IMG/VR virus record: IMGVR_UViG_3300032315_001715
Coordinates: 186,001-250,000 of that record
Length of the DNA: 64,000 bases
Reading direction: 5' to 3' (one strand)
Positions 2,018 to 17,404 of the stretch are shown in pieces; within the stretch, counting starts at the first letter, position 1, and each line of letters begins with the position of its first letter. A program made the translations under genes and the position numbers. A model generated the notes under the pieces. It saw only the letters and a program-made list of their open reading frames with translations. It did not search any database and was not told the origin of the DNA.

Positions 2018-2020
2018 AAA

Positions 2021-4203: not shown

Positions 4204-4856
4204 TGCGCGGAACACTGGTAACCATACACGACAACAACTATGCAAAGCTAGCCGACTTAACGTGGACTAGAAATCGAACACAATATGCGCTGAAACACGG
4301 TTACGATGCCATAGCCAAGACCAGTGGGTTCGATACCTCCATGTCAATCGGCTTTGCTAAGATCGCACTGCTGCTTGAGATCATGCACAAGGGGCAGCAC
4401 GATGTGCTCCACTGGAGTGGCACCGATACGCTGATTACTAATTTTCATATACCATTGTCAGAATTCCTATACGATGGATATCACGTAACCATTGCTACCG
4501 ATTTTAACGGTATCCAAAGCGATAGCTTTGTGATACGCAATACCATGGAAGGTCGGGCATGGTTACAAATGATCATGGATAAAATGCCAGAATATCGAAA
4601 TCATCCATTTCTAGAACAAGGAGTGATGATGGAAACCTATCAACAATATCAACACATCGTCAAGGTTGTTCCGCAGAGATTTTTGAATAGCTATCACTAT
4701 CCCCTTTACAAAAACAAGGGGGCACGCAATAATCATGATAAACTAGGATTTAGCGGACAATGGCATGTTGGTGATTTTTTGATCCATTCTCCGGATCAAC
4801 CCATGCACATACGCATGGACCTATTCAATCAAATACTACCAATGGTGGTTACATAA
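4203..4856 (+). CDS. GT34 (GMA12/MNN10-like) glycosyltransferase
   Basis: FAKIALL, W...DTLITN, DFNGIQSDSFVIRNT, EQ, and W..GDFLIH.P. The DxD motif reads GTD. Confidence 0.7.
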   Translation: MRGTLVTIHDNNYAKLADLTWTRNRTQYALKHGYDAIAKTSGFDTSMSIGFAKIALLLEIMHKGQHDVLHWSGTDTLITNFHIPLSEFLYDGYHVTIATDFNGIQSDSFVIRNTMEGRAWLQMIMDKMPEYRNHPFLEQGVMMETYQQYQHIVKVVPQRFLNSYHYPLYKNKGARNNHDKLGFSGQWHVGDFLIHSPDQPMHIRMDLFNQILPMVVT

Positions 4857-4864
4857 GGATCCTA

Positions 4865-6190
4865 ATGCCAGATATCAGCGCAATCCTCGGTCTCGTCCAG
4901 GAACACATTACTGACAAGCACGCAACAAAGAGCTGGATACCTGGCGTTGATACCGTGCAATATGCCGGACCGTATTTTGACCATCGAGAATATGTCGCAG
5001 CGGTTGAAAGCCTCCTCGGCGGCTGGTTGGTCTTGGGCAAGGATGCACAGAAATTCGAGCACCATTTTCCTAGGCAATTCGGCAAACTACATGGGGTCCT
5101 TACCAACAGCGGCAGTTCCAGCAATTTAATACAAACGAATGCCTTACGCAGCAAGAGGTTATGGAATCTCCCGCAGGGTACCAAGGTGTTGACCCCAATA
5201 GCTGGTTTTCCAACAACCGTTAATCCAATTTTGCAGGTCGGATTTGTACCGGTCTGGGTTGATATCGACCTCGACGGGCTAAATCTCAATCTTGATCATG
5301 TTGAGCAGATCCTCGAGGACGATCCGGAGATACGCGTCATCACCTTTGCGCATGTCCTTGGTAATCCGCCAAACATGGCTCGATTGATGGAACTGGTTCA
5401 AAAACACCAGCTGATACTGCTAGAGGATTGTTGCGACGCGCTTGGCAGCACCTATGATGGAAAACCTCTGGGTAGTTTTGGCGAGATGGCATCCTGTTCG
5501 TTTTACCCTGCACATCACATCACCGGAGGGGAAGGTGGGTTCGTCGCCACTAGAACAGCTGAGCAGGAACAGGTTGTACGGAGCTTCCGTGAGTGGGGTC
5601 GAGGCTGCTACTGCGTCGGACCGAAGGCCAATCTTCTTAAGAATGGTACCTGTGGTTGCCGATTCAAGGAATGGGTTCCGGCCATGCCTGGTGAGATTTT
5701 TGATCACAAATACGTTTATGACGAAATTGGTTATAACTTAAAGCCAATTGAGCTACAGGCCAGCATGTTGTTGGTACAAATGGACAAGCTAGCCGAGATC
5801 GGTGCATTGAGACGCAGAAATCATGCATTGTTGCTTGATATATTCAAGCCTTACGAGCAGTTCTTTCATCTCCCATATGCAACACCGGCAAGCGATCCAA
5901 GCTGGTTTGCGTTTGCTTTAACCATACGAAACGGTGCACCGTTTGATCGCAGGCGATTCGTTGATCATGTCGAAAGCGCTAAGATCCAAACAAGACCGTA
6001 CTTTGCTGGCAACATCATGTTGCAACCAGCATATGATCATCTCGTCGATCCAGTTGCAACCGCTGCAAGATATCCCACGGCTACCAAGGTCATGCGAGAC
6101 ACGTTCTTCCTCGGAACCAGCCCGGTTATCACCATTGAGCAGATCGCGTACATTGGTGAGGTAGTGCGTGGATTCATGGAGACGATCTGA
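4865..6190 (+). CDS. rfbH: NDP-4-keto-6-deoxyglucose 3-dehydrase (RfbH/DdhC, E1), DegT/DnrJ/EryC1/StrS fold
   Basis: TNSGSSSNL, LLEDCCDALGS, SFYPAHHITGGEGG (His in place of the Schiff-base Lys), Cys cluster CYC..TCGCRF, HKYVYDEIGYNLKP. Confidence 0.9.
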   Translation: MPDISAILGLVQEHITDKHATKSWIPGVDTVQYAGPYFDHREYVAAVESLLGGWLVLGKDAQKFEHHFPRQFGKLHGVLTNSGSSSNLIQTNALRSKRLWNLPQGTKVLTPIAGFPTTVNPILQVGFVPVWVDIDLDGLNLNLDHVEQILEDDPEIRVITFAHVLGNPPNMARLMELVQKHQLILLEDCCDALGSTYDGKPLGSFGEMASCSFYPAHHITGGEGGFVATRTAEQEQVVRSFREWGRGCYCVGPKANLLKNGTCGCRFKEWVPAMPGEIFDHKYVYDEIGYNLKPIELQASMLLVQMDKLAEIGALRRRNHALLLDIFKPYEQFFHLPYATPASDPSWFAFALTIRNGAPFDRRRFVDHVESAKIQTRPYFAGNIMLQPAYDHLVDPVATAARYPTATKVMRDTFFLGTSPVITIEQIAYIGEVVRGFMETI

Positions 6191-6816
6191 TGATCAGCAA
6201 ACAAGAGATGATGGATTTTGAGGAAGAAATCGGCTATAGATTCAACAATCGAGAGATACGAGCGCCAATACATCTTTCATCCGGTAACGAGGATCAAATC
6301 ATTAGGATCTTTGCGGAATGTGGCGTTGACATCAACAACGATTGGGTGTGTTGTACATGGCGCAACCATTATCAAGCACTACTCAAGGGGGTGCCAGTTG
6401 ATATTCTACGTGATCAGATCATCTCCGGTAAGAGCATGGTGCTGAATTTACCAGAATACAAGTTTGTTGCATCCAGCATTGTCGGCGGTATCCCTAGCAT
6501 TGCCGTTGGTCTAGCACTGGCAGCAAAGCTTAGGAAGAGCAGCGAGCGAGTATGGTGCTGGACCGGAGACATGAGTGCCGAGACCGGCGCATGGCACGAA
6601 GCATACAAATATTCCGTCAACCACGATTTACCGATTACGTTTGTCGTTGAGGACAACGGTCTCAGCGTTCTAACTCCGACCTCGGAGATATGGGGTCGCC
6701 GCGTGCCGTATTATGCCGCTGACCAGGACTGGTACCAGGATCGACACCTGATTTACTATCGATATACCAACAACAAATGGCCGCATGCCGGTGCCGGGGT
6801 AAGGGTGCAGTTCTAA
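6190..6816 (+). CDS. TPP-dependent enzyme, E1-alpha/transketolase N-terminal-like subunit
   Basis: HLSSGNE, WRNH, SSIVGG, GD..AETGAWHEA...EDN TPP-binding region. Confidence 0.85.
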   Translation: MISKQEMMDFEEEIGYRFNNREIRAPIHLSSGNEDQIIRIFAECGVDINNDWVCCTWRNHYQALLKGVPVDILRDQIISGKSMVLNLPEYKFVASSIVGGIPSIAVGLALAAKLRKSSERVWCWTGDMSAETGAWHEAYKYSVNHDLPITFVVEDNGLSVLTPTSEIWGRRVPYYAADQDWYQDRHLIYYRYTNNKWPHAGAGVRVQF

Positions 6817-7358
6817 TGAGCAATCAGCTATATAACCGTCGACTTCGAGAGGCAATGAATTGGCTCGCCATGCAATCAAATACGGTATTTCTAGGACAAG
6901 CGGTTAGCTATGCCGGCACCGGATGCTACGAAAGCTTGACCGAGATACCATCTGAGAAAAAGATAGAATTTCCTGTTGCTGAAAATTTCCAAATCGGCGT
7001 CAGCATTGGCTTAGCAATGAATGGATTGATTCCGATCAGCGTCGTACCTCGTTGGAATTTTTTGTTGTGTGCTGCTGACCAAATCGTCAATCATCTTGAC
7101 AAGATGTCGTTGCTCAGTGACGGAGGATACCAACCAAAGGTCATCATACGTGTTGCGGTTGGTTCCGAGCATCCCGTTGATCCGCAGGATCAACACAAGG
7201 GTAATTTTTCCCAGGCGTTTCGATTGATGTGCAAGACCGTGGACATAATCGAAGTAACCAATCCAGGATCCATACTATCAGCATATCAGCTGGCATACAA
7301 TCGCACCGACGGCCGCAGCACCATCGTGGTTGAGTTTCCCGATTACATGAAGGACTGA
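6816..7358 (+). CDS. TPP-dependent enzyme, E1-beta/pyrimidine-binding subunit (no C-terminal domain)
   Basis: VFLGQAV, IEFPVAE..Q.G.SIGLA..G, DQIVNH, QH. ATG 6816 overlaps the upstream TAA. Confidence 0.85.
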   Translation: MSNQLYNRRLREAMNWLAMQSNTVFLGQAVSYAGTGCYESLTEIPSEKKIEFPVAENFQIGVSIGLAMNGLIPISVVPRWNFLLCAADQIVNHLDKMSLLSDGGYQPKVIIRVAVGSEHPVDPQDQHKGNFSQAFRLMCKTVDIIEVTNPGSILSAYQLAYNRTDGRSTIVVEFPDYMKD

Positions 7359-7360
7359 AT

Positions 7361-7390
7361 TTGCAAGGCCGAGCCAACGACTGTTACTAT
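7361..7390 (+). promoter_or_regulatory. Internal sigma70-type promoter
   Basis: TTGCAA-N18-TACTAT with an extended -10 TG, in the only sizeable gap of the cluster. Confidence 0.45.
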
Positions 7391-7408
7391 TGATAATATT
7401 TGGAGAAA

Positions 7409-8248
7409 ATGGTGGACGATCCGGTGATATTAATGACAGGTGCTGCTGGCATCGTCGGACGAGTGCTGTCGAGAGAACTTGCGCATCGACGCATCATCGG
7501 AATTAACAGCATTGATGCCGATCTATCCGATACGGCACAATTCTCAAGCATCATGGATAGATATCAACCTGACGTTCTCCTGCACTGCGCTGCTAGGGGA
7601 GGACGCCAACCAGCCGGTATCTTTAATCAAGATGACCTGATAAACAATCTACAGATAGTTGAAAACATAAGGTATCACCGTGATCGATTTAAACAGATCA
7701 TCAATATATCCAGCGGTGCTGAGTATGGTCTAGAACGTGCAATCGTCGATGTTGAGGAAATTTGGTTAAATCGCAACATGTATCCCCTACCAACTGATAG
7801 CTACGGATTGTCAAAGAGAATTTCATGGCAGATTTTTGAAGATATGGAGAATGCGATTAATGTTCGCATATTTGGTTGCTTTGATCCAACCGAATCCGAT
7901 TCTAGACTGTTGAGAAGATTTGTCAATTGTAAGACCAAGAAACAGGGAAATTTCCAATTACGCCACGATCGTCCGTTCAGTTGGATATCCATGGTTGATC
8001 TAGCCACGGTCATTGACTCGATCGTTGAGAACGGCGCACCAAGCACCATTAACGTTGCATATCCAGAAACTGCGTCCATGCTGTTAAGTGACTTTCTCAA
8101 TCGATGGTGCAAAATACACGGTGTTCCGCCGGATTACGAGATCGTTGATGAGATTGGACTTTCGTACACATGCAACAGTGCTATCATGCAATCTCTCATC
8201 AACCGACCGTTAAGGGGACTGGATGCTTGCCTAAAGGATTACACATGA
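7409..8248 (+). CDS. NAD-dependent epimerase/reductase (extended SDR)
   Basis: TGAAGIVG, HCAA, SSGAEYG, YGLSK. RBS GGAGA precedes ATG 7409. Confidence 0.85.
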   Translation: MVDDPVILMTGAAGIVGRVLSRELAHRRIIGINSIDADLSDTAQFSSIMDRYQPDVLLHCAARGGRQPAGIFNQDDLINNLQIVENIRYHRDRFKQIINISSGAEYGLERAIVDVEEIWLNRNMYPLPTDSYGLSKRISWQIFEDMENAINVRIFGCFDPTESDSRLLRRFVNCKTKKQGNFQLRHDRPFSWISMVDLATVIDSIVENGAPSTINVAYPETASMLLSDFLNRWCKIHGVPPDYEIVDEIGLSYTCNSAIMQSLINRPLRGLDACLKDYT

Positions 8249-9195
8249 CCAAAAAGGTTGTTTACATAACCGGTTGCCTAGGATTTATCGGTAGCTACAT
8301 CACCAGGAGTTGCCTCGACCGAGGTTGGTACGTGATGGGCATTGACTATGAGACCTATGCGGCAAATACGGAATATCTACAGGAGTTTAGTGGTTACGAA
8401 AACTTCACGTATCAACATAAAAATATCAATGATCTCAATATGCTTTATGACTGTGATTACATCATTAATACCGCAGCAGAGACCCATGTAGATAACAGCA
8501 TCGTCAACAGCAACGAGTTCATCCGTAGCAACATCGACGGCGTGCATAATCTTCTCAGATTGATACAAACCAAAAGCAGATTTCAAATGCCAACGCTGGT
8601 ACACTTCAGCACCGACGAAGTCTATGGCGATCTTGTTAATGGCAGCCACACCGAAAAGGATCTAATGAGGCCGAGCAATCCGTATTCGGCGACCAAGGCC
8701 AGCGCCGATATGCTGGTGCTAGCTTGGCATAGAACATATGGAATACCATACATCATCGTCCGTCCGACCAATAACTACGGTACCGGGCAATATGTTGAAA
8801 AATTCATACCAAAGGCCTGCAAGAGCCTCATGTTGGGACGAAAGTTACCAATGCACGAAAACGGTACTCCTATTAGAACTTGGCTACATGCACAGGATAC
8901 CGCAGATGCGGTGATCTTCCTGATAGAAAGCGGTAAGACCAATGACATATACAACATCAGCGGAAACTATGAAGATACCAATCTAAACGTGTTTAAAAAA
9001 ATACTTTCGTCTCACGGTGTAGATCCTGATTCATACTTGAAGCACGTTGATTTTTCATTTACGAGGCCCGGGCAAGACGTGCGCTACAGCGTCGATGACA
9101 CAAAACTGAGAAGCATCGGTTGGACGAATTCTAGATCGTTTGATGATGAGATACCAGCAATCGTCGCATACTATCGGTCTCGATTCATATGGTAA
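8245..9195 (+). CDS. rfbB: dTDP-glucose 4,6-dehydratase
   Basis: TGCLGFIG, AAETHVDNSI, STDEVYG, PSNPYSATK, NNYG, RPGQDVRYSVD. ATGA overlap at 8245. Confidence 0.9.
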   Translation: MTKKVVYITGCLGFIGSYITRSCLDRGWYVMGIDYETYAANTEYLQEFSGYENFTYQHKNINDLNMLYDCDYIINTAAETHVDNSIVNSNEFIRSNIDGVHNLLRLIQTKSRFQMPTLVHFSTDEVYGDLVNGSHTEKDLMRPSNPYSATKASADMLVLAWHRTYGIPYIIVRPTNNYGTGQYVEKFIPKACKSLMLGRKLPMHENGTPIRTWLHAQDTADAVIFLIESGKTNDIYNISGNYEDTNLNVFKKILSSHGVDPDSYLKHVDFSFTRPGQDVRYSVDDTKLRSIGWTNSRSFDDEIPAIVAYYRSRFIW

Positions 9196-10064
9196 ATCCC
9201 GTTATTGCGGTGCGATTTGGGCCCAAGGATGGTATCGTTGTTCGATGGCAGCTTAGAAATGCTCCTATAGCCAAGAGATGGCTAGCGTCATTGAAACAGG
9301 CTTTACCATACGGCATAAATGAACGAGATCGCATCTACAACATGCCAATACAACCATGGAATCGAAATACCATATGTGAAGAATTAACTGATTGCATGTC
9401 AAAAATTGAACGATTCTATCCAGATTTCTTTGATGTATGGCCAACACCTACAATGGATCATGAATCCACTAACGTAATGCATCTAGCATTTGAAAAACTA
9501 AGGGGATCCATTGAAGTTCCATCGGAACTCTATATCAATGCCCCGTATGATGTGCAAATGGAAATATGTCGGTACAATGTACTGATACACCGTTGGGAAA
9601 GCTTCGTGGGCAAAGGACCGCCCAGGGTGGTATGCACATTTAATAAGCCGTTTCGAACACCGTTGCTAGATGACGATTATTCATATTTTTCCGTCGGGCA
9701 CACATACGGAGCGCTGACGATCAATTATCCACAAGTTGGGAAACAACTGCTAGACGTATATCGAGATGATGATATGGTCGTCAGTGCCAAAGCCATAAGA
9801 CCCATGGATCATTATGCCGCTGGATTTGTTGCCCGATTTTTTGAAATCAATACCAATGCTACTGATTCAATTCTCGAATCGTTTGACAAATGGTATGACA
9901 CTAACCATACACACATGTTATCCCTTGGATTTGATCGAGATGATCCAAGGCTCGCCATAGGTTACATACAGGTAGCTGATCTAATCGAGGATCGCGATAG
10001 GACCGCGATGCTTTACAGCATTGGAAAGTCCGGTATAATCGGTGATGTTTGGATCGAAGAATGA
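9189..10064 (+). CDS. Hypothetical protein in the sugar cluster
   Basis: 291-aa ORF overlapping both neighbours; no motif recognised. Confidence 0.7.
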   Translation: MVNPVIAVRFGPKDGIVVRWQLRNAPIAKRWLASLKQALPYGINERDRIYNMPIQPWNRNTICEELTDCMSKIERFYPDFFDVWPTPTMDHESTNVMHLAFEKLRGSIEVPSELYINAPYDVQMEICRYNVLIHRWESFVGKGPPRVVCTFNKPFRTPLLDDDYSYFSVGHTYGALTINYPQVGKQLLDVYRDDDMVVSAKAIRPMDHYAAGFVARFFEINTNATDSILESFDKWYDTNHTHMLSLGFDRDDPRLAIGYIQVADLIEDRDRTAMLYSIGKSGIIGDVWIEE

Positions 10065-10768
10065 AAATAGCCCTACAGATCAGTGGTCGATTGCGATATA
10101 CCGCCGAAAGCATCGGATCTATCATGGCTAGCATTGTTGAGACGCACCAACCTGATATATTCTGTTCTTTTTGGAATGCAGAGAATGACGCAACTTTGAA
10201 AAATTGGTCAGACTATCTCAATCCCCTGTTGATCGAAACCGAAGATCAATCGTTGATAAGACCGTATCTAGACGAACTATTTCAATTTAATGTGCATGCT
10301 AACATGCCGAGCATGAGCTATAAGTTCCATCGAGTGTCAGCCATTCGACAGGCATACGAACGAGCAAACGATGTTAGATATGATGTTGTCATACAAGCTC
10401 GTGCCGACAACATATTCTTTGAAAAGCTTTCAGTTGACATGTTGTCAACGGTGTCAGACGCCGGCATCTATTGCGCCAACGGCAGCATCAACAGCACCAT
10501 AGACCCATATGTACGCCCAAGGATGGTTGATAACTTCTATCTTGGAGATCCTGCCAGCATTGATCTAGCTGCTAGCACATTCTGGCATCTAAGGCGACAG
10601 GCCCAGGAATATACCGCTGCCGGTATGTTGCATCATGTCAGGATTCCCGAAATAATACAAAGCAAGATATGGAATGATCTTGGCATCAATATTCGTCCAT
10701 TGCCAGGAAACAATCCATTTGGTAACTTCCATTACGATATAGATCGGCGTGACACGCCATGGAGATGA
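10061..10768 (+). CDS. Glycosyltransferase-like protein (MKIAL..SG..R family)
   Basis: MKIALQISGRLR N-terminus and YDVVIQARAD. ATGA overlap at 10061. Confidence 0.55.
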   Translation: MKIALQISGRLRYTAESIGSIMASIVETHQPDIFCSFWNAENDATLKNWSDYLNPLLIETEDQSLIRPYLDELFQFNVHANMPSMSYKFHRVSAIRQAYERANDVRYDVVIQARADNIFFEKLSVDMLSTVSDAGIYCANGSINSTIDPYVRPRMVDNFYLGDPASIDLAASTFWHLRRQAQEYTAAGMLHHVRIPEIIQSKIWNDLGINIRPLPGNNPFGNFHYDIDRRDTPWR

Positions 10769-10769
10769 T

Positions 10770-11738
10770 ATGAAGCTGCTGTATGTGGTACACCGATATG
10801 CACCGTACCCAGGAGGATCTGAAATCTATGTGCAAAACATGGCGGAAGAAAGCCTGCGCCGAGGTCACGAAGTTGCGGTGTTTGCTGGAGAACACCAAGG
10901 AGATTACAACGGTGTTAGGGTATCCAGTGATACCAACATCTTGCTATATAACTGGGACCTAATCATCGTCCATGGTGGAGACGTCAATGTACAGAATTTC
11001 GTTCTTTCCAATGCTAGGCGCATACCTAGCCCTGTGCTTTATCTTCTTGTTCTACCTAGTAACAGCGATGTTTGTGTTAAGGCTCTGCATGATTGCCAAT
11101 GGATCGGATGCAGCACGCTCGCTGACTGGCAACACTGCCAGCAGCACAACGTCAACCACAAGGCCGTCGAAATAAAGCACGGGATCGATTGGACAACGTC
11201 AATCGGCAGTACCGGGTTTAAGACCAAGCACGGCATTACCAAGCGGATGTTCCTAAGCTGTGGCGGGTACTGGCCAAACAAGGCCATGCGGAGGCTAGCT
11301 GATATATTTGAAGCGGCCGATATGCCTGATTCCGTGCTGGTAACCACCGGTTATGATAATCGGATGGATCTCATGCCCGCATCTCGAGGCAGCGTCATTC
11401 CAATGTTGATTGATGATCGCAACGAGGTACTGTCAGCAATGCATGACGCCGATTGCGTGATCATGCACAGCACCTCTGAAGGATTTGGGCTAGTTCTATT
11501 GGAGTCCATGCTTAATCAAACTCCGTGGATTGCCAGAAGCATAGCCGGAGCTGAATTTTTACACAGCAAAGGACACGGGCTAACATATCATAGTGATGAA
11601 GAATTAATGGCAATGCTCAGAGGGTTCAATCGAGGGCAGTTTGATATCAAGGGGGCATATGAATACGTGACAGCAAATCATTTGATATCAAACACGGTGT
11701 CTGATATAGAATCCGTTGCTAGCCGTAAAAGTTCCTAA
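10770..11738 (+). CDS. GT4 (GT-B fold) glycosyltransferase
   Basis: HRYAPYPGGSE...A..GHEVAV and EGFGLVLLESM (E-x7-E). Confidence 0.85.
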   Translation: MKLLYVVHRYAPYPGGSEIYVQNMAEESLRRGHEVAVFAGEHQGDYNGVRVSSDTNILLYNWDLIIVHGGDVNVQNFVLSNARRIPSPVLYLLVLPSNSDVCVKALHDCQWIGCSTLADWQHCQQHNVNHKAVEIKHGIDWTTSIGSTGFKTKHGITKRMFLSCGGYWPNKAMRRLADIFEAADMPDSVLVTTGYDNRMDLMPASRGSVIPMLIDDRNEVLSAMHDADCVIMHSTSEGFGLVLLESMLNQTPWIARSIAGAEFLHSKGHGLTYHSDEELMAMLRGFNRGQFDIKGAYEYVTANHLISNTVSDIESVASRKSS

Positions 11739-12402
11739 CCCGTTCCCAGACTCCATGCGGGCTGCCGGTTTCTAAATCAACGATCATGTAGCTTATCGTT
11801 ATTCGTTGACCGTCACCTTGAAATACCGTATGTGGCAGGTTGGTTCGAACAAATCCGCCGGGAATATCGGTTGAAACCGTATGCAGCGGATCTGGAATTT
11901 GATCCCAACTTAGTTTATTTCTAGACCATTCACTGATGTATCCGGTTCTCGTACCAATTTGTTTTCCATTTACCATCACCGGTCCGGTTTCCATGACCAC
12001 TTCTGCATCACTGCCCCACCAAGATATCAACCCTGGTGCCCGAGTTAATCCGTAAAAGCTAAATCTTGCTTCCAACATGCAAAGTTCATTTTTGTAGGTT
12101 AGCGCATCGCAGTGCAATCGCTGTATCTTTGCGGAACCGTTGGCAACAAACAGGGAAGCTTCCTTAATACGCAAGCCTGCTGGCGCTAGCATCGCATTAA
12201 CCATACAAGACGTTTTTGAAAAATGTTTCGTAACACCCGAGATATAAAACAAGCTGTTGGGTGCTGTCGATGCCTTCTTTAGAGACTCAAGAAGGATATT
12301 GCTACGGAGAAAACCCGTTGCTTCTTCTTGATCCGGTTGCATTTCAGATGGTATGAAGAAATTGTTGTTGGGTTCTGAAACCCTGATATTGTTAATATCC
12401 AT
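11719..12402 (-). CDS. Putative 2OG-Fe(II) oxygenase-like protein
   Basis: LHCD (HxD), a distal PH, and RITISY; late promoter directly upstream. Confidence 0.45.
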   Translation of the reverse strand: MDINNIRVSEPNNNFFIPSEMQPDQEEATGFLRSNILLESLKKASTAPNSLFYISGVTKHFSKTSCMVNAMLAPAGLRIKEASLFVANGSAKIQRLHCDALTYKNELCMLEARFSFYGLTRAPGLISWWGSDAEVVMETGPVMVNGKQIGTRTGYISEWSRNKLSWDQIPDPLHTVSTDIPGGFVRTNLPHTVFQGDGQRITISYMIVDLETGSPHGVWERVRNFYG

Positions 12403-12407
12403 GCAAA

Positions 12408-12416
12408 TATTTATTC
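12408..12416 (-). promoter_or_regulatory. T4-type late promoter
   Basis: GAATAAATA on the minus strand, 5 nt before ATG 12402. Confidence 0.6.
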
Positions 12417-12420
12417 AAGT

Positions 12421-13287
12421 CTAGGACGATGTTCGGCTTTTTAATATCTGATCAACGTAGTCGAATGGTTCCTTGCGTGGAGCGTCTCGTTTTAGATATC
12501 TATTTGCAGCCGGGATCGATCCGGTCCTAGAAAGCATATCACTATGTGTGCCAACGTTTTTGTTTTTTGGATTGAAAATCTTGTCCTCAACAAACGAAAC
12601 AAATTGTTTCGAACCGTTATTTTGTATGAATCGCTTGATCACATTGCTCAATGTGTCAATGCACTGATGATATGCTGCTGAATCAAACGGAGTTGATTGC
12701 GGACCGGTACCAAACAATCGCTGCCAGTCACTTTTAAACATGCCACCGGTACGTTGCACGTTATCCTTGAACAGTCCGGGATTGTCATATTGCGGAAAAT
12801 CAGCCCACAATGACTGTGGAACTATACCTAATGGTTCGCTTACGGTGACGAAATACACCGGATATTTGTTATCATTTATGATCTTGTTGTAGCTCTTGTA
12901 CAATCCTCGTGATGCACCGGCCCAAGGTTTGGTCTTTGCACAGGGAACAAATGCAACCATTGAATATTTGTCTGGAACCTTATACGCCGCTATCTCATCG
13001 TGCCATGCTTTTATAATTGGATTGTTTAAGAGGTGGATGGTTTCACCTGGGGTGTATGCGGTTAGTTCTGTATCTAACGACGGGTTTGATGCCAGGCTAC
13101 GATCTACCAGGAATCGTCGGAATCTTGGCCAGTCTTCGCGTGATATGAATCCCGGTGTTCCCAGTTGCCCAAGTTCAACCGAACTAAGTTTTGAGAATGC
13201 TGCGGTTGATTCTGCTGGAGAAAGTTCGTGCGAAGATTGAGGTTTAACGGACTTGATCGAAGCTTCTAATATTTCTGATATTCTCAT
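12421..13287 (-). CDS. DUF5591/archaeosine synthase (ArcS)-like protein with an MRISEILE N-terminus
   Basis: FVPCAKTKPW and VSEPLGIVP...YDNPG match the LLPCSA.KPY and TSPLGVVP...YD.P pattern. Confidence 0.7.
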   Translation of the reverse strand: MRISEILEASIKSVKPQSSHELSPAESTAAFSKLSSVELGQLGTPGFISREDWPRFRRFLVDRSLASNPSLDTELTAYTPGETIHLLNNPIIKAWHDEIAAYKVPDKYSMVAFVPCAKTKPWAGASRGLYKSYNKIINDNKYPVYFVTVSEPLGIVPQSLWADFPQYDNPGLFKDNVQRTGGMFKSDWQRLFGTGPQSTPFDSAAYHQCIDTLSNVIKRFIQNNGSKQFVSFVEDKIFNPKNKNVGTHSDMLSRTGSIPAANRYLKRDAPRKEPFDYVDQILKSRTSS

Positions 13288-13292
13288 GACGG

Positions 13293-13300
13293 TATTTATA
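13293..13300 (-). promoter_or_regulatory. T4-type late promoter (perfect consensus)
   Basis: TATAAATA on the minus strand, 5 nt before ATG 13287. Confidence 0.75.
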
Positions 13301-13368
13301 AAATCAACAACATACCCCTGCTTGATTTATTGGTATAAATGCTGCACACTTTAATTAGAGGTATGCTT

Positions 13369-14229
13369 ATGAAATTCACATGCATGGAATGCGGCCGAGA
13401 ATTTGACCAGATAACGGGCAAACACGTTAAAACGCACGGATTCAACACCGTAGCAGAATATCTTGAAAAACATCCTGGTGCCCAAACCGTCCAAGAACGC
13501 AAGGACTCCAAGGAAACCATCGAGCGAAAACGGATCGCCCGCCTTGGTAAGAAGCATAGCGACGAGGCCAAGGCACGCATAGGCGCCGGCAACAAGGGCA
13601 AGAAGATGAGTGCGGAAGCCATTGATAAATGGCGAGAGTCCTACAGGGAGTATCTCGACGAGCACGGAAGCCCCATGCTGGGCAAGGATCGCGGTGAGGC
13701 CTTCAAGGCAAAGATGAGTGCCATCGCCAAGGCACGGCCCAAGGAACTGGTCGATGCCAAGGTCGCGCAGATGCTGGCTGCGCGACGTGGCAGCAAGGCC
13801 ACTCCTGAGCAGAGGGAGAGGTATAGTGAAGCTCGATTAAAGTTCATTGCAGAAAATCCTGATAAGATGTTACCAAGATTATTCAATACAAAGCCTGAAC
13901 GAGAATTCAAAACGGTGTTAGATGAGATGAACATCTCATACAAACATAATGTTCGCGTTGGTAACAGATTGTATGATTTCCAAATTGGAACAAATGTTTT
14001 GATAGAGCTAGATGGCCCGTTTCATTACAATTATAAAATGTATGGTGATAAATCAATGCCAGACGAAGATCGCATGGCACTGTTTCTAGAAGCCAAAAAG
14101 AAGGACGAATACAAAACGGAATTAGCTAAATCGAACGGATATGTCTTGTATCGAATTATCGTTGGTGGCAATCTTCCTGATGATTGGAAAGCACAGCTTG
14201 AAAATCAAGGTTGCACTCTATTCAAATAA
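13369..14229 (+). mobile_element. Free-standing homing endonuclease (Zn-finger + NUMOD3-like repeats + DUF559/Vsr-like nuclease)
   Basis: CMECGREF...HVKTHG, KKHSDEAKARIG, TKPEREF, YDFQIG..LIELDGPFH. AGAGG RBS before ATG 13369. Confidence 0.75.
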
Positions 14230-14253
14230 AAACCCGGCATTTCTGCCGGGTTT
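14230..14253. terminator. Bidirectional intrinsic terminator between the endonuclease and gp23
   Basis: AAACCCGGCA-TTTC-TGCCGGGTTT, a perfect 10-bp stem; GAAA loop on the minus strand; T-runs on both sides. Confidence 0.85.
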
Positions 14254-14274
14254 CTATAGGATATTTTGTAGAGA

Positions 14275-14310
14275 TTGTTTTCAATGGGCCGTGTAACCCA
14301 TTGAAAACAA
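14275..14310. repeat. Perfect 14-bp inverted repeat just 3' of gp23
   Basis: TTGTTTTCAATGGG-N8-CCCATTGAAAACAA. Confidence 0.85.
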
Positions 14311-14316
14311 AAGATC

Positions 14317-15519
14317 TCACAAAAATTTCAAATGCGCTGTATTGATGCCGATTCCCGCCAGGTAGTCAGCCGCGTTACCAAGACTGCTTGCGGTGTTCGA
14401 CAGCTCCAGGTAACCATACCTGGACATGAAGCTAACCACCGGCTCGAACGTGTTCGGGTCGATGATAACTCCGGAGCTGGTCAGAGGCACATATGGGCAA
14501 TAGTACGCAGCAGCGTCGATCTCGCCTGCGCCCTTGTAACCAACGAGAACGTTGGTGTTATCAGCTGCATACTGGTCAACATAGACGCGCATGCTGTTGT
14601 TTAGGGTTCCAACGAACTTGGTGTTGGTCGGAGCCTCAAACGTTCCCTCGGTGGTACGAGCGAATGCAGAGGTAGTTGCGCTCTGCAGGATCGTTAGGGC
14701 AGTCGGGGAAACCACGACCCAGTTACCTGCGCCACGACGTGTGCGTGCAGCGATCAGGTTTGCACCACGGTTGATCAGCACTGCAAGAGCAGCGTGCTCG
14801 TCACCAACGTAAGTTGCCGTACCGGAAACCGCACCCTGGTCGTATGTCAGGGTGGTACCAGCCAGGCTACGCAGCGACACAAGGATTTCCTGATCGATTT
14901 CTGCGGTGATTTCCTGTGCCAGCGCTGCCATGATCTCGGCCTCGATGTCAATGCCCTGTTGTGCTTGTGCATCCTGGGCAGCTTCAAAGGTCCAGCGAGC
15001 GCTCAGCTTGCGGGTCTTTGCTTCAACCGTCTCCTTGAGGATCTGGATGTTCAAACGCTTACCAGCCGTACCTTCAAGCACGCTGGTTGCAGCGGCACGT
15101 GGGTTAACGGTGTCGCCGTTGCCGCTGTAGAAGCGAGCAATGTCGAACGGGCTCAGTGCTTCAGCACCGGCCACAACGCCCGGAGCTGGTGCACCAAAGG
15201 TGTCAGCATAACGAACGCGCAGGGTGTGGATCTGACCAACTGGGCCGCTCATTGGCTGCACGCCAATGATCTCGTTGGCGATAACGGTCGGCATAACTCG
15301 ACGGATTACCGGCAGGATCACCTTGTTCAGCGTGGCAACATTGCCTGCGCTGGTTGAGCCCGGGGTGGCGTTCTCAAACAGGATTCCGCTCTTTGCTTGC
15401 AGATCCTTACGTGTGTTCTCGAGGATGATTTCCATGACCTTCTTGCGATTGCCGTTTAGACCCTCGCAAAGGGCGGTCTTGGTAGCCGTCCAATGTGTTT
15501 CGAAGAGATTCTTACTCAT
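14317..15519 (-). CDS. gp23: Major capsid protein (T4 gp23-like)
   Basis: ILPVIRRVMP..IA..IIGVQPM.GP.GQI..LR, KTRKLSARWTFEAAQD, YCPYVPL, FEPVVSFMSRYG. Confidence 0.97.
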   Translation of the reverse strand: MSKNLFETHWTATKTALCEGLNGNRKKVMEIILENTRKDLQAKSGILFENATPGSTSAGNVATLNKVILPVIRRVMPTVIANEIIGVQPMSGPVGQIHTLRVRYADTFGAPAPGVVAGAEALSPFDIARFYSGNGDTVNPRAAATSVLEGTAGKRLNIQILKETVEAKTRKLSARWTFEAAQDAQAQQGIDIEAEIMAALAQEITAEIDQEILVSLRSLAGTTLTYDQGAVSGTATYVGDEHAALAVLINRGANLIAARTRRGAGNWVVVSPTALTILQSATTSAFARTTEGTFEAPTNTKFVGTLNNSMRVYVDQYAADNTNVLVGYKGAGEIDAAAYYCPYVPLTSSGVIIDPNTFEPVVSFMSRYGYLELSNTASSLGNAADYLAGIGINTAHLKFL

Positions 15520-15531
15520 TTCAATAGCTCC

Positions 15532-16743
15532 TTAATTCTTGATACCTGCGAGGTGTAGAATCACGCCAAGGTCATCAGGTGTCTTGGTCTCCTCTATCAC
15601 TGCTTTGGCTAGGGTGTTGTTCCTATCGCCGGTCCTGGCAACAGGGGTAGTTTGATTGCTGGCCTCAGAAAGCTGAGCCTTCTGTGGTGCGCGGGCACCG
15701 TTGACCACCGCCGGAAGATAGCGGGCAAAGGTTTCCTTCAAGTTTTGTGTCTTGACGTCCTTTAGCATATCTTCCATGATGGTCTTTTTATCGCGGGCCA
15801 AAGGTGCTAGCAGCTCATTCATGGTCTGCATCCTTTGTAAGCGATCGTTGGCAGCCCGCACCTTGGCATCAGCGGTCTCCATGAGCTTTGACTTCTCATT
15901 GAGCTTTGCCTGGGCCTCGGCCAGCGCAGCCTTCTGTTCCCGAAGCTGACGGTCCAGCTTCTTGACCTCGCTACCTTCGGAGAGATAGCTAGCCATGTAT
16001 TCGGCTGCTACTGCTTCGAAAATTCGGCGACCAAAGTTGTTCTGTCGAGCAACCTTGATATCATCTCGCCATTGCACTAGCTCGCTCTTGATCACTTCAT
16101 TCAGGGTCTTGTCGACCGCCGAAGTTGCGCGATTGATGAACTTGCTTTGGGTTTCGGCAAGTCTCTTCTTGCCTTCCTGTGCTAGCTTGATTCTCTGCTC
16201 AACCAGTGCCTTTTTATCAGCCTGGAATTCAGCGATTTCTTCGCTCAATTGCTTGAGCACGAAACCTTCTAACTTGTTGACGCGAGCAGATAGCTCGCGG
16301 GCGCTGCTTTCCCTAACGGTACGCAGTTCCTTTGCCATTTCACGACGCTGTGCCTGGAGGGTCTTGCGATCCTCAACGAACTCGGCGATTTCAGTCTTAA
16401 GCTGCTCAGCAATAAATGAATTGAGCTTCTTTGCGTGCTCAACCATCATTGTTGCATATAGCTTCCTAGACTCCATCGTTGCCTTGCTCAGCTTCGCACG
16501 TTGCTTGATCATAGCTGATCGGTCCTCAGCGAACTCGGTCAGCTCCGCGCGAATGGCATCACCCAGCATCTTGTCCATGGCCTCAACAAGCACCGCCTTG
16601 TCATTTGAATAACGGGCAGAATAGTCCTCCTGGAGCTTTTGCTCCATGGCCTTTACCTTGTTGTCAAAGGCCTCCTGAAGGGCAGTCTTGACTTCTTCGC
16701 CAAGCACTTCGGTCTCCAGGAGATCCTTAATTTCCTTTTCCAT
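15532..16743 (-). CDS. gp22: Prohead core scaffold protein (gp22-like)
   Basis: Coiled-coil, E/K-rich; lies between the protease and capsid genes. Confidence 0.85.
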   Translation of the reverse strand: MEKEIKDLLETEVLGEEVKTALQEAFDNKVKAMEQKLQEDYSARYSNDKAVLVEAMDKMLGDAIRAELTEFAEDRSAMIKQRAKLSKATMESRKLYATMMVEHAKKLNSFIAEQLKTEIAEFVEDRKTLQAQRREMAKELRTVRESSARELSARVNKLEGFVLKQLSEEIAEFQADKKALVEQRIKLAQEGKKRLAETQSKFINRATSAVDKTLNEVIKSELVQWRDDIKVARQNNFGRRIFEAVAAEYMASYLSEGSEVKKLDRQLREQKAALAEAQAKLNEKSKLMETADAKVRAANDRLQRMQTMNELLAPLARDKKTIMEDMLKDVKTQNLKETFARYLPAVVNGARAPQKAQLSEASNQTTPVARTGDRNNTLAKAVIEETKTPDDLGVILHLAGIKN

Positions 16744-16756
16744 AGGACGATACTCC

Positions 16757-17404
16757 TTATCTAAGTTTCAACTCGTCCACCCAACCCAAAAGTATCTTTT
16801 TGAGATGCTTTTGTGCTATGGCATCGCGCTTAACGCTCTCAGCCAATTCGTGGACCTTCCAGCCGTGCTTGCGGTTCATGATTGCCTCATACACTGGTGT
16901 GGGATATGCATTTGGCGCAGACGGCTTAGCCACTATGTCGACGGTAAGCATGTCAAATTCAGAAACACGCCCGTTGTCATCAACGTTACCTGATCCACGA
17001 GAGCTTACACCGAGCTTAATCCCGCAATCAATCAACGTCTTAACGATGTTGCCGCACGGTGTTGGAAGTATTTGAAGCTTCCCAAATCCGTTGGCACCAT
17101 CCATCCACATCTGGGTAATTTTGTGGCTAACCCTATCCAGATGTATTTGCAATTCTTGCGGATGATCACATTCACCCAACACGCCATTATCTTGTTTAAT
17201 GGCCTCGTTAATTTGCTCAACGGCCTTTCGGATTTCGCCTACTGGATATACTCGACCGTTGTGATTACGTAGATCACCTTGGATGAAAATGCCCTTCATG
17301 TAGACGTTTTTAATTCCGCCCTGCTCGATGTTATCCTCCAAGATGATCTCAGCCTTTGCTGAGTCATAGTTGAGTGTTTCGATCAGTAAATTTTGATTCC
17401 TCAT
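16757..17404 (-). CDS. gp21: Prohead protease (gp21-like)
   Basis: GIFIQG..RNHNGRVYP, LGECDHP, VSH, GVSSRGSG, TVDIVAKPSAPNA. Confidence 0.95.
   Translation of the reverse strand: MRNQNLLIETLNYDSAKAEIILEDNIEQGGIKNVYMKGIFIQGDLRNHNGRVYPVGEIRKAVEQINEAIKQDNGVLGECDHPQELQIHLDRVSHKITQMWMDGANGFGKLQILPTPCGNIVKTLIDCGIKLGVSSRGSGNVDDNGRVSEFDMLTVDIVAKPSAPNAYPTPVYEAIMNRKHGWKVHELAESVKRDAIAQKHLKKILLGWVDELKLR

Follow-up and report, generated by a model that had tools for sequence, protein, structure and literature searches.

An ArcS2-like protein with a capsid-targeting-like N-terminus, encoded by a predicted late gene of a 452-kb T4-like phage

Introduction

7-Deazaguanine DNA modifications are a recently recognised anti-restriction strategy of phages. 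Canonical archaeosine synthase, ArcS, is a tRNA enzyme of four domains (TGT-like N-domain, C1, C2 and PUA), and its C1 core carries the motif PC-X3-KPY-X2-S-X2-H (PMC10516641). Phage ArcS2 proteins consist of the DUF5591 core alone. ArcS2 has been tested in one phage only, the T4-like Vibrio phage nt-1 (VPFG_00169, 226 aa; Cui et al. 2023, PMC10516641), where ArcS2 together with DpdA2 gives dG+ in E. coli and dG+ appeared only when DpdA2 was co-expressed. In the same study STSV2, which has only DpdA and ArcS, carries dCDG and not dG+. ArcS-type enzymes act on preQ0 that is already inserted in the polymer.

[quoted passage not shown] Ten N-terminal residues of IPIII suffice for targeting, gp21 cuts after Glu, and Alt is packaged and loses a 7-residue propeptide (PMC9026906). 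A further precedent is DarB of phage P1, a packaged anti-restriction protein with an N-terminal capsid-targeting signal, which is believed to enter the cell with the DNA (PMC9024508). An ArcS-type base-modification enzyme is not known to have been described as a head protein. Here we describe an ArcS2-like gene of a 452.8-kb T4-like phage, an uncultured phage known only from metagenome assemblies, whose product begins with a peptide resembling the T4 signal. A literature search for ArcS2 returned only unrelated papers.

Results

The locus and its neighbours

The window analysed is a 64,000-nt stretch of the phage genome. The features considered are as follows (window positions; a slash in a peptide marks the cut or predicted cut).

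12421-13287, minus strand: ORF of 288 aa (stop TAG at 12421-12423), ArcS2-like DUF5591 protein; the predicted mature form A9-S288 is 280 aa, 31.4 kDa, pI 9.3
13293-13300, minus strand: TATAAATA, late-promoter-like motif, followed by the 5-nt spacer CCGTC (13288-13292) and the ATG
13264-13287, minus strand: codons 1-8, MRISEILE, predicted capsid-targeting propeptide with a predicted gp21-type cut after Glu8 (I-L-E/A)
12784-13014, minus strand: stretch matched by Pfam DUF5591 (aa 92-168), overlapping the local matches to the NCBIfam ArcS alpha models (aa 75-168)
12922-12945, minus strand: PCAKTKPW (aa 115-122), the family's version of the ArcS C1 motif PC-X3-KPY
12775-12840, minus strand: conserved block SEPLGIVP ... 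FPQYDNPG (aa 150-171), with SEPLGIVP at aa 150-157 (12817-12840) and YDNPG at aa 167-171 (12775-12789)
12424-13011, minus strand: C-terminal alpha/beta domain (aa 93-288) with the predicted fold of the AF0587 DUF5591 domain
16757-17404, minus strand: gp21-type prohead serine protease (Peptidase_S77), the predicted processing enzyme; N-terminus MRNQNLLIE/T
15532-16743, minus strand: gp22-position scaffold-like protein of 403 aa; N-terminus MEKEIKDLLE/T
14317-15519, minus strand: gp23 major capsid protein; the DUF5591 gene is the next gene on this strand
13339-14229, plus strand: homing-endonuclease-like ORF inserted between gp23 and the DUF5591 gene, absent at this place in the relative L029
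11719-12402, minus strand: downstream ORF of 227 aa with no known relatives, with its own AATAAATA (12408-12415), a 5-nt spacer and then ATG, a second gene of the predicted leaderless late type
32925-33749, minus strand: homologue of the T4 late sigma factor gp55

The first-pass annotation, made from sequence alone, had reported the PCAKTKPW, SEPLGIVP and YDNPG motifs, the MRISEILEA N-terminus and the promoter motif 5 nt upstream; each of these was found as described, and the observation is confirmed. A wrong start codon was considered and rejected, as the ATG at 13287 is the first possible start in the open frame and the homologues share the N-terminus. Amber read-through of the TAG stop was considered in view of two tRNAs with CUA anticodons and rejected; it would add two residues before a TGA. 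An Atlas search with the downstream 227-aa ORF gave no usable hit.

The protein has a DUF5591/ArcS core

In a Pfam search the protein matched DUF5591 (PF17884) at E 1.7e-6 and 28.4 bits against a cut-off of 26, although the match covers only profile positions 1-74 of 150. The precomputed PF17884 annotation is present on most homologues. The NCBIfam ArcS alpha models matched locally, around the PC-X3-KP motif, at E 2.9e-8 and 3.5e-6. These matches, at 32.6 and 25.9 bits, are far below the cut-offs of 600 and 440 for full-length enzymes, and with no PUA or TGT hit in Pfam the protein is not a canonical four-domain ArcS. The AF2 model (pLDDT 93) was compared with solved structures. AF0587 (PDB 2q07) was the only strong match, at Z 10.9, rmsd 3.1 and 134 aligned residues over model residues 93-288, with Foldseek E 8.9e-4; the next hit scored Z 6.4. 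A uracil-DNA-glycosylase-like reading was rejected, since UDG scored only Z 5.2. A profile search of solved-structure sequences with the family alignment found nothing, and only the fold comparison found AF0587.

In a 23-sequence alignment reaching down to 46% identity, all residues of YDNPG and most residues of the other two motifs are invariant. PC-X3-KPW is invariant in the family, with its Cys and Lys, but Y is replaced by W and the Ser and His positions of the ArcS motif are not conserved. nt-1 ArcS2 is equally degenerate at this motif and still gave dG+. When the family was aligned to nt-1 ArcS2 with hhalign, a probability of 87.7% and E 3.4e-6 were obtained; the C-x3-[KR]P[WY] and GI/VxPQxxW blocks, the conserved block at aa 150-171 and the SNP-containing N-terminal region were all aligned. 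The homology is weak but specific, and is not detected by BLAST. The present family differs from nt-1 ArcS2 in an extra AYTPGET segment and a longer C-terminal part (288 aa against 226 aa). Compared with archaeal ArcS alpha and AF0587, it lacks the TGT-like N-domain, C2 and PUA, and its context is bacterial and viral.

A PHROG scan of the protein found no family. tblastn of the protein and megablast of 6 kb against 50,697 deposited phage genomes found no match, and no cultured phage in that collection carries the family. A word search gave 280 relatives.

The incomplete motif leaves room for another reading, in which the protein is packaged but does not form an amidine. It could be a binder or anti-restriction factor that recognises 7-deazaguanine-modified DNA, or it could carry out different chemistry on the 7-substituent, for example nitrile to amide or carboxylate, as was proposed for the STSV2 ArcS. 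The non-conserved Ser and His, the atypical QueC-like protein (see below) and the dCDG of STSV2 are in its favour. However, the Cys, both Lys residues and about 55 other positions are invariant down to 46% identity, a degree of conservation typical of an active enzyme, and nt-1 ArcS2, with an equally degenerate motif, still gave dG+. The alternative is considered unlikely.

7-Deazaguanine pathway genes are present elsewhere in the genome

The first-pass annotation had proposed a search of the genome for dpdA, folE, queD and queC as a check, and the search was positive. The genes found lie outside the window and are listed in genome coordinates.

C1:285336-286007: FolE (166 bits, 40% identical to nt-1 FolE)
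C1:283126-283656: QueD-like (phrog_2389, E 1e-34)
C1:281261-282088: QueE-like (phrog_2076, E 2e-44)
C1:287052-288692: unannotated TGT-fold protein of 546 aa next to FolE, candidate DpdA
C1:375035-375694: divergent QueC-like protein (Pfam QueC 25.2 bits against a cut-off of 22)

The 546-aa ORF carries the motifs GDSGGFQ, HYLGNG and SFDAAS, collinear with and spaced like those of nt-1 DpdA2. Its AF2 model (pLDDT 85) matched tRNA-guanine transglycosylases in essentially all listed top Foldseek hits, at E about 1e-6. Pfam TGT gave no hit in the phage genome, but this is not evidence of absence, as the same model also misses the proven nt-1 DpdA2. NCBIfam did not recognise the ORF either. The nt-1 DpdA2 family, phrog_10773, had no hit in the genome, hhalign of the 546-aa family against nt-1 DpdA2 was not significant, and a profile search of PDB sequences with the family found nothing useful. 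The TGT assignment therefore rests on the fold, the three motifs and an Atlas look-alike, and the fold does not tell DNA from tRNA as the substrate.

In nt-1 the ArcS2 gene sits inside a QueD-ArcS2-FolE-DpdA2-QueC cluster and its product has no CTS-like N-terminus. Here the gene sits after gp23, about 82-89 kb from the FolE-QueD-QueE-TGT-fold cluster and about 176 kb from the QueC-like gene. Promoter motifs did not assign a timing to the cluster. The QueC-like protein is very divergent, and preQ0 may not be the base the phage makes. The complete relative G004 (372 kb), whose homologue is 61% identical and begins MRAREFIVE/A, also has the S77 protease, QueE and the TGT-fold protein. Two large records with more distant homologues, G008 (81% complete) and G011, lack QueE and the TGT-fold protein; G011 also lacks an S77 hit, although its homologue begins MLFSQWLE/T.

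These results also bear on the possibility that the Que genes, the TGT-fold protein and the ArcS-like protein install a 7-deazaguanine such as archaeosine or a Q-type base in the phage's own tRNAs or in host tRNAs; if packaged, the enzyme would act on host tRNA right after injection. Canonical ArcS is a tRNA enzyme, the best structural matches of the 546-aa protein are tRNA enzymes, the genome encodes 43 tRNAs, including Asp-GUC, Asn-GUU and Tyr-GUA, and some homologues occur in genomes without the TGT-fold protein or QueE. Against this, the protein lacks the PUA RNA-binding domain and the TGT-like N-domain, its nearest characterised viral relative gave dG+ in DNA, and the 546-aa protein shares motif spacing with the DNA enzyme DpdA2 and is recognised by neither Pfam TGT nor NCBIfam. 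A head-gene position and head-targeting signal fit a DNA-linked role better. A tRNA substrate is considered improbable.

A late-promoter-like motif lies 5 nt before the ATG

The exact 8-mer TATAAATA is not enriched in the genome (19 copies against 15.7 expected) and taken alone would not be significant. In contrast, NATAAATA is about 16-fold enriched upstream of genes. Of 99 copies of ATAAATA, 55 lie 0-40 nt upstream of a gene start on the same strand, and the enrichment in the -60 to -1 region is 15.6-fold. Twenty of them lie 2-7 nt from the ATG; a 4-5 nt spacing is the commonest arrangement, with 5 nt the commonest. The site thus fits a genome-wide class and predicts a leaderless late mRNA that starts at the A of the ATG. 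In a search with T4 gp55 a homologue was found in the window at E 9.6e-6, with 30% identity over residues 6-116 of T4 gp55. The motif is conserved with a 4-5 nt spacer in the relatives L030, L031 and L041, while in L033 and L034 the spacer is 19 nt and contains a Shine-Dalgarno site. A search for sequencing runs holding the sequence found only DNA metagenomes (the likely source sample plus small shares in freshwater and lake samples) and no RNA, and the late timing is inferred from sequence.

The N-terminal peptide is separable and shared

The N-terminal peptide is disordered in the model, with pLDDT below 50 for residues 1-7. The 39 homologues without an extension form one clade (SH-aLRT 99) in a tree built without the N-termini, and their proteins begin at about the predicted cut (MKKTIKSV against E/ASIKSV). 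In the 55 homologues with an extension, P3 is I/L/V/M in 43 and P1' is A/S/T/G in 42. The peptide is 8-14 residues long in most homologues, which read, for example, MKASEFIQE/A, MRANEFMFE/A and MRYHEFVIE/E. T4 IPII and IPIII begin MKTYQEFIAE/A; the peptide here is 8 residues against 10 in the IPs. DarB is an unrelated 250-kDa protein with a signal between 9 and 30 residues long, from a phage with a different assembly system.

Within this genome an unrelated 172-aa ORF starts with the identical MRISEILE. At least six more predicted late ORFs with no known family start MKINEIISE/A, MRIKEIIE/A, MKIKDILE/G, MRFQHILE/A and so on, and gp21 and gp22 carry the same kind of N-terminus. The core pattern occurs at position 2 of 4/591 proteins against 20/130,318 internal positions, though the pattern was defined post hoc; for a looser pattern, also post hoc, the effect is modest (odds ratio 2.5, p 0.006). 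In a different lineage (L041) the homologue and an adjacent GNAT-like ORF share the N-terminus MNFKNWLLL. The gp21-type protease gene (Peptidase_S77 at 90.6 bits, phrog_207 at E 3.9e-57) lies about 3.5 kb upstream, and the DUF5591 gene follows gp21-gp22-gp23 in five relatives. A complex prediction of gp21 with residues 1-40 of the protein gave a score of 0.00 in a run without controls and is no evidence either way.

The shared N-terminus could have another cause. The protein may be an ordinary cytoplasmic late enzyme that is not packaged, the M-[KR]-I-x-E-I-L-E pattern reflecting constraints on translation initiation of late, often leaderless, A-rich mRNAs, or a different shared function such as regulated turnover. 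The gene has no Shine-Dalgarno site, 34 genes of the genome, with a 2-8 nt spacing, share the leaderless arrangement so that the 5' coding sequence may be under nucleotide-level selection, the shared coding stretch in L041 is nearly identical at the DNA level, and direct evidence of packaging is lacking. However, most genes of the leaderless class have unrelated N-termini, and MRISEILE of the 172-aa ORF is encoded by different codons and follows a normal Shine-Dalgarno site. Homologues keep the peptide behind a leader with a Shine-Dalgarno site (L033, L034) and where the 30 nt shown upstream hold no NATAAATA (L029, L035). The protease-type ending in about three quarters of the homologues, the occurrence of the peptide on gp21 and gp22, which are prohead-core proteins in T4, and its absence from a whole clade also speak against this reading, which appears unlikely.

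Discussion

The gene is best explained as encoding a stand-alone ArcS-core enzyme of the phage ArcS2 kind, belonging to a 7-deazaguanine nucleic-acid modification pathway that the phage encodes itself. By analogy with ArcS and nt-1 ArcS2, the enzyme most likely acts on the nitrile of preQ0 already inserted in DNA; the conserved Cys116 and Lys120 of the PC-X3-KPW motif would take part, and the product would be an amidine (dG+) or a related derivative. In this view the gene is transcribed late from a gp55-type NATAAATA promoter so close to the ATG that the mRNA is probably leaderless. MRISEILE would be a T4-type propeptide that brings the protein into the prohead core and is removed by the gp21-type protease after Glu8, and the 31-kDa basic mature enzyme would stay in the head with the DNA and probably enter the next cell with it. 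We place the probability of this explanation at roughly 0.55. The analysis itself establishes the domain identity, the predicted fold, the pathway genes, the promoter class and the modular and shared nature of the peptide, whereas packaging, cleavage, injection, late transcription, substrate and product are inferred.

The interpretation in the first-pass annotation, a late-made, possibly packaged and injected enzyme related to deazaguanine or tRNA modification, is supported in each element that could be examined computationally. Its remark that late timing is unexpected for a DNA-precursor enzyme rests on a wrong premise, as a late, post-replicative step is not odd for an enzyme acting on the polymer.

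If an ArcS2-type enzyme is carried in the capsid, DNA-modification chemistry would be linked to head assembly and to the first seconds of infection. More tentatively, the last step of DNA hypermodification, or its upkeep or repair, would take place inside the head or at the moment of injection, and the enzyme would be the first base-modification enzyme known as CTS cargo; the same signal would mark a further set of unknown cargo proteins in this and related uncultured jumbo phages. This is possible but less likely than not. Carriage of the enzyme in the capsid would also give a sequence rule for predicting packaged and injected proteins in uncultured T4-like phages, namely the N-terminal pattern M-[KR]-x-x-[ED]-hydrophobic-hydrophobic-(x)-E followed by a small residue, behind a late promoter.

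The 546-aa protein belongs to a large unannotated TGT-fold family with more than 2,400 metagenomic members that may be a further DpdA-type group. The genome also has a large class of apparently leaderless late genes, and relatives of the enzyme without the tag occur in bacterial-looking contexts.

The DUF5591 locus and its phage

Examination of the minus strand of the window revealed a single ORF of 288 aa, and the features that the first-pass annotation had described for it are all present, so that the observation itself holds. The ATG is the first possible start in the open frame, and the homologues share this N-terminus. The gene and the features around it are as follows.

12421..13287, minus strand: ORF of 288 aa with the N-terminus MRISEILEA and the motifs PCAKTKPW (aa 115-122), SEPLGIVP (aa 150-157) and YDNPG (aa 167-171)
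13293-13300, minus strand: TATAAATA, followed by CCGTC and the ATG
14317-15519, minus strand: gp23
15532-16743, minus strand: gp22-position protein
16757-17404, minus strand: gp21-type Peptidase_S77
32925-33749: gp55 homologue
13339-14229, plus strand: homing-endonuclease-like ORF

The window is part of an IMG/VR virus record of 452,799 bp, rated complete, and the phage is T4-like. No cultured phage in the deposited collection matched either the region or the protein, and a search of sequencing runs found the region only in freshwater or lake DNA metagenomes. The homing-endonuclease-like ORF (PHROG HNH/homing endonuclease families, weak NUMOD3) is inserted between gp23 and the DUF5591 gene. 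It is absent at this place in one relative (contig L029), whereas in another (contig L007) two other ORFs are inserted there. On the opposite strand, a long block of genes (1160-11738, plus strand) ends next to the DUF5591 gene in a GT4 glycosyltransferase (10749-11738). In L007 the equivalent block (9235-16861) holds epimerases, transketolase-like subunits, a methyltransferase and several glycosyltransferases, and looks like a sugar-biosynthesis cluster.

Identity of the protein

Four lines of evidence place the protein in the DUF5591/ArcS-core superfamily. In the family searches, Pfam DUF5591 scored 28.4 bits against a cut-off of 26 (E 1.7e-6), over half of the profile. The NCBIfam archaeosine synthase alpha models matched locally around the motif (E 2.9e-8 and 3.5e-6), far below their full-length cut-offs. 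A word-based protein search found 280 relatives of about 275-305 aa, almost all from metagenomes. An alignment reaching down to 46% identity has 55 invariant positions, including P115, C116, K118, T119, K120, P121, W122, S150-L153, the F164-F173 block, H248, K266, R267 and R271.

With this alignment AlphaFold gave a confident model (pLDDT 93, pTM 0.90), in which residues 1-7 are the only stretch below pLDDT 50. The only strong structural match of the model is AF0587 (PDB 2q07), a DUF5591-plus-PUA protein, at Z 10.9 and rmsd 3.1 over 134 residues covering model residues 93-288. The next hit scored Z 6.4 and uracil-DNA glycosylase Z 5.2. Foldseek agreed (E 8.9e-4). Finally, a profile comparison with the characterised viral relative, Vibrio phage nt-1 ArcS2, gave a probability of 87.7% and E 3.4e-6 over 99 columns, with the Cys-x3-[KR]-P-[WY] and G-[IV]-x-P-Q-x-x-W blocks aligned.

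Phage and virus ArcS proteins consist of the DUF5591 core alone, the C1 motif is PC-X3-KPY-X2-S-X2-H, the motif is degenerate in nt-1, and nt-1 ArcS2 together with DpdA2 yields dG+ in E. coli plasmid DNA (PMC10516641). The present protein keeps PC-X3-KPW but not the Ser and His. It is therefore a member of the DUF5591 superfamily and a distant relative of phage ArcS2, and not a canonical four-domain ArcS. A packaged binder, or an enzyme with a different chemistry on the 7-substituent, is a rival reading, given the precedent of dCDG in STSV2 (PMC10516641).

7-Deazaguanine pathway genes in the genome

A search of the genome for dpdA, folE, queD and queC had been proposed beforehand as a check on the assignment. 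The genes that it and the accompanying profile searches identified are listed below.

Candidate 7-deazaguanine pathway genes. C1, genome coordinates; L006, the stretch of the same genome that carries the FolE-QueD cluster.
FolE; C1:285336-286007; tblastn with the nt-1 cluster proteins, 40% identity, E 6e-41; Pfam GTP_cyclohydroI, 166 bits
QueD-like; L006:7127-7657; PTPS, 55.9 bits; phrog_2389, E 1e-34
QueE-like radical SAM; L006:5262-6089; phrog_2076, E 2e-44; best NCBIfam hits are all QueE models
QueC-like, 219 aa; C1:375035-375694; PP-loop SGGIDS and a C-terminal CxxCxxC; Pfam QueC, 25.2 bits against a cut-off of 22, only its C-terminal part matching

A SegE-like GIY-YIG gene (L006:8431-9321) splits the FolE-QueD cluster, as the homing-endonuclease-like ORF does at the DUF5591 locus. 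The QueC-like protein (minus strand) is very divergent. Its gene is convergent with the adjacent C1:374855-376033 (plus strand), which encodes a 392-aa twitch-domain radical SAM protein (NF033640, 160.8 bits against a cut-off of 170) that did not match any archaeosine-related radical SAM model.

The Pfam TGT model found nothing in the genome. As the same model also misses the proven nt-1 DpdA2, this silence is uninformative. Next to FolE lies an ORF of 546 aa (C1:287052-288692; L006:11053-12693, minus strand) without a Pfam, NCBIfam or PHROG hit. A feature search of the Atlas pointed to clusters of TGT-like proteins, and 2,442 metagenomic relatives were found. The protein carries GDSGGFQ (110), HYLGNG (273) and SFDAAS (305), which are collinear with VDSGGLQ (76), HMLGFG (235) and SYDSS (265) of nt-1 DpdA2, with almost the same spacing. 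Its AlphaFold model (pLDDT 85) matched tRNA-guanine transglycosylases in essentially all listed top Foldseek hits, at E about 1e-6. These results suggest a further DpdA-type (or tRNA) transglycosylase family, marked by DSGGFQ / HxLGxG / [FY]D[AS][AS] motifs, that current profiles miss.

Thus, the phage has a complete or nearly complete 7-deazaguanine gene set, including a TGT-superfamily enzyme that is a candidate DpdA, with either DNA or tRNA as its possible substrate. A tRNA role for the pathway is a rival possibility, since the genome has 43 tRNAs and the fold matches of the 546-aa protein are tRNA enzymes. This reading is weakened by the lack of a PUA domain in the DUF5591 protein and by the nt-1 precedent. 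Among the 43 tRNAs are two adjacent ones with the anticodon CUA (C1:321051-321206; amber-suppressor type, labelled 'Pyl' by aragorn). The ORFs read normally under table 11, so general recoding is not indicated.

Co-occurrence of these genes was also examined in other records. The complete 372-kb relative G004, whose DUF5591 homologue is 61% identical, also has the S77 protease, QueE and the TGT-fold protein, and the fragment G005 has the TGT-fold protein. Two records with more distant homologues (G008 and G011) have neither QueE nor the TGT-fold protein. The link to the pathway is therefore not universal across the family.

The predicted late promoter

The exact TATAAATA is not over-represented in the genome (19 copies, 15.7 expected). 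ATAAATA is, as 55 of its 99 copies lie within 40 nt upstream of a gene start on the same strand (15.6-fold enrichment), and TAAATA is 13-fold enriched. The spacings fall in two classes. Of the 94 genes with TAAATA within 50 nt upstream, 34 have it only 2-8 nt before the ATG (20 with ATAAATA at 2-7 nt), most often at 5 nt, with no room for a Shine-Dalgarno site. The rest have 15-40 nt and an AGGAG site. The DUF5591 gene belongs to the short class, as do the 227-aa ORF just downstream of it (AATAAATA at 12408-12415, minus strand, then 5 nt and ATG) and the QueC-like gene (GGTAAATA, 5 nt, ATG).

At T4 late promoters transcription starts a few bases after the element. A 5-nt spacer would then put the start at or next to the A of the ATG and give a leaderless mRNA, an inference from sequence alone. 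A large class of such apparently leaderless late genes is not known to have been described for T4-like phages. The arrangement is conserved in relatives: AATAAATA with 5 nt in contig L030, TATAAATA with 5 nt in L031, CATAAATA with 4 nt in a 45%-identical homologue (L041), and AATAAATA with 19 nt and a GAGGA site in L033 and L034. Late expression is thus well supported at the sequence level. The first-pass annotation had considered late timing unexpected for a DNA-precursor enzyme, but it is not surprising for an enzyme that acts after base insertion.

The N-terminal peptide

The first-pass annotation had likened the N-terminus to the targeting peptides of T4 internal proteins, and five observations support this idea. 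The first is modularity. The 120 listed homologues fall into two kinds: 62 carry an N-terminal extension, most often of 8-14 residues, in front of the conserved [ST]-I-K-S-[IV] segment, and 37 start directly with MKKTIKSV. In a tree built without the N-terminal region, the proteins without an extension form one clade (SH-aLRT 99), which also includes three members whose starts were called too far upstream. All other clades carry an extension. The predicted mature phage protein (E|ASIKSV...) therefore corresponds to the full-length protein of that clade.

The second is the cleavage-site pattern. Among 55 extension-bearing homologues, the residue three before the last Glu is I/L/V/M in 43, and the residue after it is A/S/T/G in 42. 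In the present protein the site is I-L-E|A. The third is likeness to T4. IPII and IPIII, read from the T4 record, start MKTYQEFIAE|A, and homologues of the DUF5591 protein read MKASEFIQE|A, MRANEFMFE|A, MRYHEFVIE|E and MRIKEFIIE|A. The first 10 residues of IPIII are reported to suffice for head targeting, gp21 cuts after Glu, the enzyme Alt is packaged and loses a 7-residue propeptide, and related phages carry varied proteins with CTS-like sequences (PMC9026906).

The fourth is sharing of the peptide within the genome. An unrelated 172-aa ORF (C1:127046-127564, plus strand) starts with the identical MRISEILE, written in different codons and following a normal Shine-Dalgarno site. Further ORFs with no known family start MKINEIISE|A, MRIKEIIE|A, MKIKDILE|G, MLIKDLVE|S, MRFQHILE|A and MKNFRDYLAE|S, and most of them sit behind NATAAATA. 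Together with the 172-aa ORF, the following are candidate further head-packaged or ejected proteins.

C1:82955-83692, minus strand: ORF with no known family and a similar N-terminus
C1:72542-72823, minus strand: likewise
C1:304410-305146, minus strand: likewise
C1:338877-339425, minus strand: likewise
C1:162919-163710, minus strand: likewise
C1:21902-22429, plus strand: likewise

The phage's own gp21 (MRNQNLLIE|T) and gp22-position protein (MEKEIKDLLE|T) have the same kind of N-terminus, and T4 gp21 is noted for a matching LIE-9 site (PMC9026906). The core pattern is found at position 2 of 4/591 proteins against 20/130,318 internal positions (Fisher p 4e-6). A looser pattern gives an odds ratio of 2.5 (p 0.006), and its hits are enriched for late promoters (7 of 14 against 94 of 591). 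These patterns were defined after seeing the data, and the numbers are only indicative. In another lineage, the 197.5-kb IMG/VR contig L041, a GNAT-acetyltransferase-like ORF and the adjacent DUF5591 homologue (L041:5427-5969 and 5977-6927) share the N-terminus MNFKNWLLL[NS]E, the first 21 coding bases being identical.

The fifth is position. In five close relatives the gene follows gp21-gp22-gp23, and in L029 it follows gp23 directly. An alternative is that the protein is a cytoplasmic, unpackaged enzyme whose N-terminus reflects translation constraints. This is weakened by the diversity of N-termini among leaderless genes and by the presence of the peptide behind normal leaders.

Genomic contexts support a split between phage and non-phage members. 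Extension-bearing homologues lie in T4-like phage contigs, with S77 protease and gp23 in L007, a type II topoisomerase and a T4 gp9/10 domain in L016, and PhoH, thymidylate synthase and DHFR in L018. One counter-example exists: the 373-kb record G011 has a 536-aa fusion homologue (contig L043:5974-7584) beginning MLFSQWLE|T, with a C-terminal domain of about 250 aa, but shows no S77 hit. Of the members without an extension, one lies among MutS, YhdP, S49 peptidase and pilin-like genes, which looks bacterial, and two others lie among ORFs with no known family. Hits in the genome collection are in Bdellovibrionota and CPR MAGs and lack the extension. The clade without the extension (loci L008/L009, protein P0073; L019, P0093; L020, P0057; and L010-L015) occurs in bacterial-looking contexts and in contigs of up to 1.69 Mb rich in ORFs with no known family.

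Proposed mechanism

The domain, the predicted fold, the pathway genes, the promoter class, the modular and shared peptide and the protease gene are established by the analysis, whereas the events that follow are inferred. In this view, the protein is made late and enters the prohead core through residues 1-8. The gp21-type protease would trim it after Glu8, leaving a 280-aa protein of 31.4 kDa and pI 9.3, which would stay with the packaged DNA and probably be ejected with it. By analogy with ArcS and ArcS2, its reaction would be the addition of an amine to the nitrile of preQ0 in the polymer. Such a packaged enzyme may finish the modification on packaged or entering DNA, protect the incoming modified DNA, as the T4 IPs (PMC9026906) and P1 DarB are reported to do, or act on the first replicated copies before late genes are on.

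The interpretation put forward in the first-pass annotation, a late-made and possibly packaged and injected enzyme related to deazaguanine or tRNA modification, is thus supported by the sequence evidence, with packaging and injection remaining inference. We are confident of the ArcS2-like pathway assignment and give the full model including packaging a probability of about 0.55, while an enzymatic role inside the capsid or at injection is only a tentative suggestion. Phage ArcS2, T4-type targeting peptides and NATAAATA late promoters are each known. To our knowledge their combination, an ArcS2-type base-modification enzyme that carries a predicted head-targeting propeptide and sits in the head-gene module, is not. 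Elsewhere in the window, a single ORF of 3,676 aa occupies 48997-60027 on the plus strand.
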